Positions 58,156-61,307 are shown, numbered from the whole stretch's first letter. The stretch is DNA of 63,558 nt, filler included, from Dicyema japonicum (GCA_011109175.1; 7 parts of 7 records of this genome joined end to end with filler, not necessarily neighbours in it); one strand, 5' to 3'. Translations and numbers: made by a program. The notes: a model not told the origin generated them from the sequence alone.

Positions 58156-61100
58156 GAACGACTACTCAGGGGTTCTGAAGGAGGATCTAATCCTAGACAG
58201 AGCTACGACTAGTAACAATTCCCTATAGAAAAGGAAACTGTACTATTTCTAATCTTAATGTTAAGTAGTATTGAGATTATTTCCTTTTCTTCTTATAAAG
58301 TATTTTAACTTTACCAGAGAGTGCACCTATCTTAGGAGGTGAGACTTATCTTAGTCTTTATCAAGATAGTTCTCATATAATTTATTAGTATCTATAAAGT
58401 TATTTAGAGTGGAACTATCTTGTGATATCATGCTCTATGATCACATCATGGTATAGTCTCTAGTGAGTATGGTCTAGGATTAGACTATTTAAGATAAGGC
58501 GACCACTCCACACGAGACTCTCTCCTGTAATGATTAGGCTGCGTCTAGTCGAAGTGGGATATAAAAGGGAGTGTGAGGTACACTCTTCCCTCCTGGCCCG
58601 AACACGATCTATAGAGGTCACATAGATTCTTTATACTACTTCAGATGTAACAATATTCTTATTGAAGAATCTATGACTAATAAAGAGTAAGTAACNATAG
58701 ACAAAGACGACCACCCCACACGAGACGTTCCTAGTGTGTAGGCTGCGTCAAGTCGAGTGTTGTGTATAAAGGGGAGTGTGAGGAACACTCTTCCCTCTCC
58801 TGGCCCGAACACGATAGGGAGAGAGCATAGATTCTTTATACTACTTTTAATGTAACAATATTCTTGTGGAAGAATCTATGGATATAAAGAGATAAGACCG
58901 CTCTCAATAGTTGATTCGTTCTCAAGATTTAAAAACCTAGACTCGGTCAAGGAATCAACTTATACTGTTAGTAAAGAGAAAGTAAAGCCAAAGAAACTTT
59001 CTAATCCACCATCAAACAAGTCCAGTTGACAATCGGCTACTCAGGGCTTCTAGGAGGTGGAGACTACTACGATAGAGTGACGACCAACTAAAGAAAAGTA
59101 ACAATCACAGCAATCTTTATCTGTAAGTGTCTATAAAAGGTGTTTCTTTTCTTCTTATGAAAGGTTTCTTCTACCTAAGGAGTATCTCAAAATTAAAGTT
59201 GAGGGTTTGTCTTGTTCTTAGTCAAGATAGTTCCTATATAAATTATTAACAACTATAAAGTTATTTAAGACCGAACTATCTTGTACACATCGTGTTCTAT
59301 ACACACATATACACGTCTATAGTGTGTATGATCTAGTGTAGGGATATATAGACAAAGACGATCAATCCCACACGAGACACTCTGCACGTGAGTAGGCTGC
59401 GTCAAGCGAGTGTGGTATATAGGGGGGAGTGTTCTTCACACTCTTCTCTCCTGGCCTTAGAACACGATCTATAGAGAGGGAAGCATAGATTCTTTATACT
59501 ACTTTAAGTATGACAAGATTCTTAAGGAAGAATCTATGTATATAAAGAAGAAGTTCTTTCTTATATAAGTTGATTCGTTCTCAAAACTTAAGAATGTTAG
59601 ATTAGATCTAGGAATCAACTACACACTCTTTTAGTAAAGAAAAGTAAAAATAAAAGATACTTTTCTGTTAATACAACAAACAACTCCCGACGACGATCGT
59701 CTACTCAGGAATAAGCTAAAGATTCCACAGAACCAACCATGTTGACCAAGTGTTCTACAATTTAGTCTAGATTCCTAGAGAAGTATGTCACTAGAAACTA
59801 AGGATCGTAAAGAATCTTCTCTAATCAGAATCAGAATGGTTGCTTTCTGCCAGTCCTATAGAGAGGTTTAAGGGGTCACTAGGAGTGAGGATAACTACGG
59901 CTAAGTTAAGTCTTATCTTGCTTAGTACAAGATAGTTCTAGTCTCTAATAATTTACTGACATATATAAAGTTATAATAAGCGAACTATCTTGACATAGTA
60001 TCGTGCTCTATACTCATGCGTACACATGTCTCTATGCTGAGTATGTATAATCTAGACAAGATAAGACGATCAATCCCACACGAGACACTCTGCACGTGAG
60101 TAGGCTGCGTCAAGCGAGTGTGGTATATAGGGGGGAGTGTTCTTCACACTCTTCTCTCCTGGCCTTAGAACACGATCTATAGAGAGGGAAGCATAGATTC
60201 TTTATACTACTTTAAGTATGACAAGATTCTTAAGGAAGAATCTATGTATATAAAGAAGAAGTTCTTTCTTATATAAGTTGATTCGTTCTCAAAACTTAAG
60301 AATGTTAGATTAGATCTAGGAATCAACTACACACTCTTTTAGTAAAGAAAAGTAAAAATAAAAGATACTTTTCTGTTAATACAACAAACAACTCCCGACG
60401 ACGATCGTCTACTCAGGAATAAGCTAAAGATTCCACAGAACCAACCATGTTGACCAAGTGTTCTACAATTTAGTCTAGATTCCTAGAGAAGTACGTCACT
60501 AGAAACTAAGGATCGTAAAGAATCTTCTCTAATCAGAATCAGAATGGTTGCTTTCTGCCAGTCCTATAGAGAGGTTTAAGGGGTCACTAGGAGTGAGGAT
60601 AACTACGGCTAAGTTAAGTCTTATCTTGCTTAGGACAAGATAGTTCTAGTCTCTAATAATTTATTGATATACATAAAGTTATAGTAAAGCGAACTATCTT
60701 GACATAGTATCGTGCTCTATACTCATGCGTACACATGTCTCTATGAGTATGATCTAACTTAAGATAATACGATCAGTCCACACGAGACTATCTGCACGTG
60801 AGTAGGCTGCGTCAAGTCGAGTGTGGTATATAGAGAGAGGAGTGTGAGGCACACTCTTCCTCTCCTGGCCCGAACACGATATAGGGTGAGAGGTAATCAT
60901 AGATTCTCTATATCATTTAGAATGTGACAATAATCTTAGGTGAGAATCTATGTGTATAAAGGAGATAGCCTTATAAGTTGATTCGTTCTCAAGGTGCAAG
61001 AATGCTAAATAAGATCTAGGAATCAACTACCCTCTTTTAATAAAGAAAAGTATAAGTAAAAGAATACTTTCCCCCCACCACATCAAACAATCATATCTTG

Positions 61101-61307
61101 ATGATCAGCTACTCAGGAACGAATGAGGAACTACACATAGGCTAACAGACTAGCTATATTCTATAATTTAGTCAAGATTCCTCAGAGAAGTGCGTCACTA
61201 AGAAACTGAGAAGTGTGTGAGACTTCTCTAATCAGAGTCAAGATGTCTGCCCTATAAAGGTTTAGAGGGGCTAGGGATAAGTATGACTACTACTAGGTTA
61301 GTATTAT
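58156..61307 (+). ncRNA. Tandem array of ~660-710 bp units encoding a putative large structured RNA of unknown family
   Basis: Anchor CTACTCAGG at 58162, 59037, 59701, 60409, 61109; anchor CCACACGAGAC at 58508, 58716, 59368, 60076, 60778. At least eight conserved stems with compensatory changes; no ORF of 60 aa or more. The repeat is certain; RNA function is inferred. Confidence 0.6.

Follow-up and report, generated by a model that had tools for sequence, protein, structure and literature searches.

Tandem arrays of noncoding RNA genes include those of 5S, U1/U2 and SL RNA, along with the viral EBER and HSUR clusters, and most finds of large structured RNAs beyond the known housekeeping families come from bacteria and phages. 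The 530-bp Bag530 spacer units of Bacillus carry a polymerase I (Pol I) start motif and a palindrome (PMC2590618), and in the Cucurbita promoter duplicates Pg and Ps this motif is accompanied by a complementary tract downstream (PMC6589552). Animal non-LTR retrozymes span 51-972 bp (10.64898/2026.07.22.740005), and the GC content of animal retrozymes is low (PMC7229834). Helitron termini comprise a 5'-TC and a short hairpin near the CTRR 3' end (PMC13085455).

We have found a selected, unannotated structured repeat of Dicyema japonicum that is filed under no known family. The window analysed is a stretch of 63,558 nucleotides, filler included, made by joining parts of seven records of one assembly (GCA_011109175.1), and repeat units fill its entire 3152-base piece at 58156-61307, where parts of six units lie on the + strand. 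Like rDNA spacer-promoter repeats, the array is built of tandem 0.5-0.7-kb units with one TATA-plus-purine, Pol I start-like motif per unit, its conservation peaks at that motif and at palindromes, and its copy number changes by unequal exchange; unlike them, its units are 22-35% diverged, far more than those of Bag530, and keep about ten helices. With retrozymes and with ribozyme satellites such as pDo500 (going by its title, PMC2837043) it shares a head-to-tail, ORF-free, strongly folding unit of a few hundred bases and low GC (about 37% in the piece, consistent with animal retrozymes), whereas the Dicyema units contain no known ribozyme, have neighbours of different types and carry a promoter-like core in every unit. 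Tandem arrays of non-autonomous Helitrons are also head-to-tail with a short hairpin ending 11-13 nt before a CTRR end, but here no 5'-TC follows the CTRR, type switches fall elsewhere, and many more internal helices are conserved. As in tandem noncoding RNA gene arrays, upstream motifs and a TATA-like box precede a structured tract; in contrast to those, there is no Rfam match, and structure extends over most of the unit rather than over a short gene in free spacer.

The array is laid out as follows, X1 being a 2019 SRA run:

58156-61307, + strand: the whole piece, a tandem array with parts of six units that extends past both ends
58162-58695, + strand: unit U1/U1A, interrupted by the gap after hairpin m
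58696, no strand given: assembly gap, a single N, separating U1A (left) from U1B (right)
58697-59354, + strand: unit type A', the 3' half of U1B plus the 5' half of U2, about 651-658 nt
59355-60062, + strand: unit type B, 708 nt, with exact contigs in run X1
60621-61307, + strand: unit type C, the 3' half of U4 plus the 5' half of U5, about 683 nt

Units are arranged head-to-tail, measure 651-708 nt and are 65-78% identical to one another, except for one recent 99% duplication (59355-59975 against 60063-60683, offset +708, 5 substitutions). Since the 3' part of U2, U3 and the 5' part of U4 are largely this one duplication, each half of the unit is represented by only three to four independent copies. 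A covariance model built from the conserved core identified five copies in the piece, all on the + strand. The initial annotation, made from the sequence alone, had described a tandem array of about 700-nt units with no ORFs, and this description holds: the 9-nt anchor CTACTCAGG occurs at five sites (58162, 59037, 59701, 60409 and 61109) with spacings of 875, 664, 708 and 700, the last three as annotated, and no ORF in the piece exceeds 58 aa. A tRNA scan of the piece was also negative. Its count of about 4.5 units requires revision. The 875 spacing crosses the N at 58696, and X1 contigs continue on both sides of it, three of them extending the left side into a normal three-way junction and one connecting a U2-like half to 58697, with a loose end at 58910. 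The N therefore marks a gap in the assembly, and what had been counted as 4.5 units with an internal duplication is parts of six. An internal tandem repeat of about 205-208 nt (205 nt by TRF) is an artefact of the join at the N, where two units abut.

Related sequence carries on past both ends of the piece, as seen in the X1 joints from 59682 to 58156 and from 61303 to 60621. The change from one unit type to another takes place within a unit (near 59350, and again between 60634 and 60745), a pattern that would point to unequal exchange or conversion and not to whole-element insertion. The X1 contigs allow each unit type to be read as self-closing (59355-60062, 58697-59347 and 60621-61303), and exact type B contigs occur with no branch where the piece changes type; there may be sub-arrays of a single type or free circles. 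The dinucleotide bias of the piece is strand-symmetric and unusual (AG 1.42, CT 1.53, TC 1.36, TA 1.14, GC 0.56, CG 0.60). CG is low, but TG and CA are not raised, so there is no sign of CpG methylation decay. Palindromic words (CTAG, TCTA) are over-represented.

Run X1 may derive from the assembly's own sample and so lends no independent support. It contains 66% of the sampled words of the piece, and zero words of the piece were found in two smaller runs of the same sample. In the SRA word search, no RNA run contained the repeat; neither X1 nor its two sibling runs, which are of unspecified kind, are on record as RNA. A total of 102 X1 contigs map on the piece, 9 at 99% identity or more, 23 at 95-99%, 30 at 90-95% and 40 below 90%, and depth is 118-351 in the 21 best-supported single contigs. 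From the depth summed at stem o we estimate roughly 15 or more distinct units. Such depths could come from a single-copy cluster, had the run been deep, as well as from a high-copy higher-order repeat, had it been shallow. Some contigs exit the unit at 58608 and 59339 into unrelated A-rich sequence; these exits could mark edges of the array or belong to truncated copies that are dispersed.

The following features were recognised within the unit, with coordinates of a representative copy and the starts or spans of others:

59710-59909, no strand given: variable domain u, with individual folds of two sub-types; also 58171-58344, 59046-59205 and 61118-61307
59910-60067, no strand given: domain I, an outer helix closing stems b, c and e; also at 58345, 59206 and 60618
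60076-60176, + strand: conserved core, putatively promoter-like; also at 58508, 58716, 59368 and 60778
60076-60123, + strand: hairpin g, which is weak, contains a tandem GA/GA apposition and is disrupted in U1A and U1B
60124-60135, + strand: TATA plus purine run, matching a Pol I start consensus exactly here and at 59416, and with one mismatch at 58560, 58765 and 60827
60135-60151, no strand given: hairpin or palindrome j, invariant 6-bp arms around a free 5-nt centre of fixed length; also at 58569, 58774, 59427 and 60840
60192-60246, no strand given: hairpin m, an 11-bp stem with a 33-nt spacer in five of five copies and one double change; also at 58621, 58826, 59484 and 60898
60276-60328, no strand given: three-way junction o, an invariant 9-bp stem plus two short arms; also at 58909, 59568 and 60976
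60346-60374, no strand given: hairpin q, with compensatory A/T run length, following a conserved A[AG]TAAA; also at 58977 and 61047
60397-60417, + strand: small, covarying hairpin s with the invariant anchor CTACTCAGG, five anchors in all
60000-60010 with 60166-60176, no strand given: candidate long-range helix d/l, whose mismatch an X1 variant at 58809 would turn into C-G
58186-98 with 58472-84 in U1, no strand given: candidate long-range helix u/d', perfect over 13 bp; in type B 59765-73 with 60049-57, 9 bp

Selection on paired segments is supported by several measures, and the stems are conserved beyond chance. Four units contain 7, 4, 10 and 5 perfect Watson-Crick helices of at least 9 bp, where dinucleotide shuffles yield 1.0-1.7, and whole units fold with z-scores of -1.9 to -4.3 on either strand. 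Consensus-fold z-scores, which compare an alignment with column-shuffled alignments and are given here for the + and - strands, reach -7.8/-8.9 for domain I, -5.4/-5.9 for hairpin m and -3.8/-2.3 for the region from n to t. Substitutions are rarer at paired sites (0.14 per site) than at unpaired ones (0.24), and spacers within the invariant arms are near-fixed in length (33 nt in m, 34-35 in o, 5 in j, 39-44 in b). Within domain I, the outer helix has two double changes between U1 and U2, stem b (59928-59992) is invariant over 11 bp, inner stem c has a bulged G, and stem e has one double change. All ten stem coordinates cited in the initial annotation are exact, and its statement that copies diverge in loops while keeping their stems stands for the stems themselves. 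It does not extend to the whole unit: domain u, about 190 nt directly after the anchor, has 47% identity and no common fold (four-copy consensus-fold z 0.4/-0.8), and the core is conserved at 81% with no excess structure. X1 variants omit or replace 80-88 nt of domain I (58373-58462), so parts of this domain are more variable in the family than the piece shows.

Covariation, on which the initial annotation had relied, is present only in part. Inspection by hand identified about 8 double-sided changes (two in the outer helix, one each in e, m, an arm of o and s, and two to three in u/d', where homology is uncertain), along with one compensatory run-length change, an indel, in hairpin q. In stems b, m and o, 30 of 31 pairs never vary and are therefore uninformative on pairing. 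In an unbiased test, in which pairs predicted from one copy alone were scored in the other copies, there was no excess: the pair was kept in 40 of 149 single and 12 of 28 double changes, with 43 and 11.7 expected. With low power and dilution by copy-specific helices, this test speaks neither for nor against covariation. The long-range pairings that involve the anchor (h/t, k/t and f/s) are complementary, do not covary and are broken in U1A and U1B.

The strand argument of the initial annotation, that wobbles read as G-U on the + strand, does not hold, since G-U and A-C on the + strand stand at 33:26 (p 0.43) in strand-neutral alignments of local helices. One of its examples, ATAATTT/AAAGTTAT, is equally a bulged G on either strand. 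The tally leans to the + strand from domain I to m (27:9, p 0.012) and to the - strand from n to q (6:17, p 0.06). Among those of the 40 best-supported X1 variants that fall in stems (of helices that we chose), 9 give G-U on the + strand or repair an A-C, against 3-4 opposite (p 0.15-0.27). These variants and the tandem GA/GA in hairpin g, which we take to be a known RNA motif only when read on the + strand, slightly favour that strand. Folding with DNA parameters is as strong as with RNA, with z-scores of -2.4 to -5.1 on both strands. Judged by folding energies, the predicted fold could equally be RNA, single-stranded DNA or a cruciform. The claim that selection acts on a single-stranded RNA fold, likely of the + strand, consequently keeps its first element, selection on paired segments, and is reduced to a slight lean in strand.

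Two X1 variants (joints from 59339 to 58719) have different letters ahead of the CACGAGAC motif, which means that hairpin g does not always begin with CCA; one of these variants would improve pairing with the partner strand of U1B.

The best-conserved block of the unit is the core (81% identity), in which CACGAGAC, TAGGCTGCGTC, TATA plus purines, hairpin j, CCTGG and GAACACGAT follow one another. It begins with an invariant 8-nt motif 45-49 nt ahead of the TATA, followed by an invariant 11-nt motif 23-26 nt ahead of it; the TATA and purines directly precede hairpin j, after which come the two further conserved motifs. The consensus-fold z-score of the core is -1.3/-1.1, and conservation with no excess structure implies that its sequence matters. 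The start of the core in unit B (59353-59375) resembles what we take to be a Pol III B box and a plant snRNA upstream element; this resemblance is lost in the other copies, and its spacing to the TATA is 40-43 nt. No Pol III terminator or A/B box is conserved in the units. A pyrimidine tract begins 23-27 nt past the TATA, so that a Pol II reading is also possible.

The Pol I start consensus used here, TATA>TANGRRRR, is that of arthropods as quoted in PMC2590618, and is weak and AT-rich. It is expected by chance at 0.01 per unit for an exact match and 0.19 with one mismatch, and because the five cores are homologous their matches count as one observation. The consensus also matches the AT-rich hairpin n in unit B. 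The conserved block spans about -49 to +35 of the Pol I-like site, and motif spacings within it vary by 3-4 nt. The TATA motif would serve equally well at a gene promoter and where Pol I starts. This unstructured, promoter-like core was missed in the initial annotation, which had listed an rDNA spacer among the identities that would speak against it; the core keeps the rDNA-spacer reading alive.

The initial annotation recognised no family, and the searches agree. Rfam, queried at E up to 10 with the piece, one unit and one core, returned only sub-threshold snoRNA and miRNA matches. Motif scans for hammerhead, HDV, twister, group I R/S, group II D5, Sm, C/D and A/B boxes and telomere repeats identified nothing conserved; the hammerhead core was absent from the + strand and had one unconserved CUGANGA match on the - strand, at 61185. 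Neither a family model nor a core match was obtained in the units for pistol, hatchet, hairpin, group I, group II or RNase P/MRP, and mapping known ribozymes onto the helices by hand failed on topology or core bases. Arrays of tRNA, 5S, snRNA, SL, SRP, snoRNA or miRNA genes were rejected for want of a family match, a conserved Sm site, A/B boxes and a T-run terminator. A TRIM/Cassandra or LTR element was likewise rejected, as there is no Met or Lys primer site and no 5S match, and the purine tracts are arms of hairpin j. The reading as a polyA signal with an LTR was discarded because the hexamer is at chance level (1.3 expected per unit). Resemblances to 5S, RNase P, U6atac, 7SK, SRP, VS, the hairpin ribozyme and an IRES were considered and set aside, as none of them was present in all copies or scored in Rfam.

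Six patterns gave 0 matches in IMG/VR, and JGI metagenomes gave 3 chance matches only. Phage and plasmid collections had none by blastn. A loose 18-base pattern hit at least 120 loci in GTDB; among the 120 loci listed none was related by blastn and, in the first 47, none by covariance model. Full-text literature searched with pairs among six unit motifs gave no match, and the Bag530 supplements contained none of four tested motifs.

The array, its growth by unequal exchange, three conserved 9-11-bp stems with near-fixed spacers and an unstructured TATA block are observed. On these we base what we consider the best reading, held tentatively and still far from assured: a tandem array in which each unit would drive its own transcription and yield a structured RNA outside all known families. 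It is hypothesized that the core block binds a polymerase or factor, that a transcript starts at or shortly after the TATA, most likely on the + strand, and that it folds into hairpins j, m, o, q and s, domain u and domain I. A protein would recognise the invariant stems sequence-specifically, and the role of the RNA would then be to bind protein, as a scaffold or decoy, and not to cleave itself as a ribozyme, with the variable u domain differing among copies. The three conserved folds, the lower rate at paired sites, the excess helices, the roughly 8 double changes and one indel and the fixed spacers all argue for such an array, as do the X1 variants (9 against 3-4, not significant), the GA/GA apposition, the 65-78% identity of neighbours and about 100 related X1 contigs, which indicate many distinct units at similar dosage. 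Against it are a covariation signal not above the null, a strand tally that is not significant and runs opposite in the two halves, DNA that folds as well, the SRA search in which no RNA run held the repeat, the missing Pol III terminator and A/B box, a polyA-like hexamer at the frequency expected by chance, and a TATA motif that suits Pol I equally. The foremost alternative, itself unlikely, is that the units are subrepeats of an rDNA intergenic spacer, in which a duplicated Pol I spacer promoter with an ETS-like hairpin tract would act as a Pol I enhancer or entry site and vary in number by unequal crossing-over. The Pol I motif, within one mismatch at the homologous site in five of five cores and exact in U2 and U3, the conserved unstructured block around it, the period, the fresh duplication and the depth in the hundreds would all fit; however, neighbours diverged by 22-35% and 40 of 102 contigs less than 90% alike do not show the homogenisation of a spacer, invariant stems across the unit are unexpected, the motif spacing and the second consensus match in hairpin n weaken the promoter, and Rfam detected no rRNA sequence in the piece.

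Ranked after the spacer, and likewise unlikely, is an element acting at the DNA level, whose hairpins in single-stranded DNA, cruciforms or dimeric protein sites would belong to an origin or rolling-circle repeat (Helitron-like, an organellar control region or minicircle, or a viral origin). Its long stems are perfect and strand-symmetric, folding with DNA parameters is strong on both strands with no overall strand bias, the unit types in X1 can be read as self-closing, and palindrome j, whose arms are invariant around a free centre of constant length, terminates 11-13 nt ahead of the last letter of CTGG, which is the Helitron 3' geometry. Given the many hairpins, that geometry is likely due to chance; CC and not TC follows CTGG in all five cores, and the switches in unit type lie some 100 nt before that junction. 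Neither the CRESS nonanucleotide loop NANTATTAC nor the kinetoplast CSB-3 12-mer was found in the piece, IMG/VR and the phage and plasmid collections gave no match, and multibranch and long-range helices would suit RNA better. The initial annotation had proposed a ribozyme or retrozyme, and we consider a retrozyme or viroid-like element improbable, in which multimers would be cut near the anchor by an unrecognised ribozyme, circularised and copied to tandem DNA by a borrowed reverse transcriptase. Unit size and GC lie within the animal range, invariant motifs that look unpaired come together with possible pseudoknots at the anchor, a single anchor-to-anchor monomer can accommodate every candidate long-range helix, and both strands fold. 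Yet no known ribozyme core was identified (Rfam at E up to 10 included, with only the unconserved hammerhead match on the - strand), the anchor pairings do not covary and are broken in U1A and U1B, no RNA run in the SRA search contained the repeat, and adjacent units that differ in type, with switches inside the unit, are not copies of one circle. An ordinary old satellite of no function, with stems made by template-switch repair of inverted repeats, is very improbable: over-represented CTAG and TCTA and covariation not above the null are compatible with it, but arm-to-arm repair predicts many compensated changes where 31 bp of b, m and o show one, and spacer lengths are fixed although the surroundings diverge by about 25%.

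Under the preferred structured-RNA reading, a eukaryotic array of at least 15 diverged units selected on the same helices would constitute an unusual new class, and its many copies supply the alignment depth needed to solve the fold. A more specific proposal, eukaryotic self-promoted multi-domain RNAs of about 0.65-0.7 kb with pseudoknots meeting at an invariant core, which would be catalytic or RNP-nucleating, and possibly processed to unit-length circles, is unlikely. If the array is an rDNA spacer instead, it is an unusually diverged and structured one that would reveal which spacer-promoter features selection retains. On the minus strand, hairpin b (59931-60008 and 60639-60717) weakly matches the section of the core model that represents hairpin m (E about 0.01), and b, m and o may have descended from one module.
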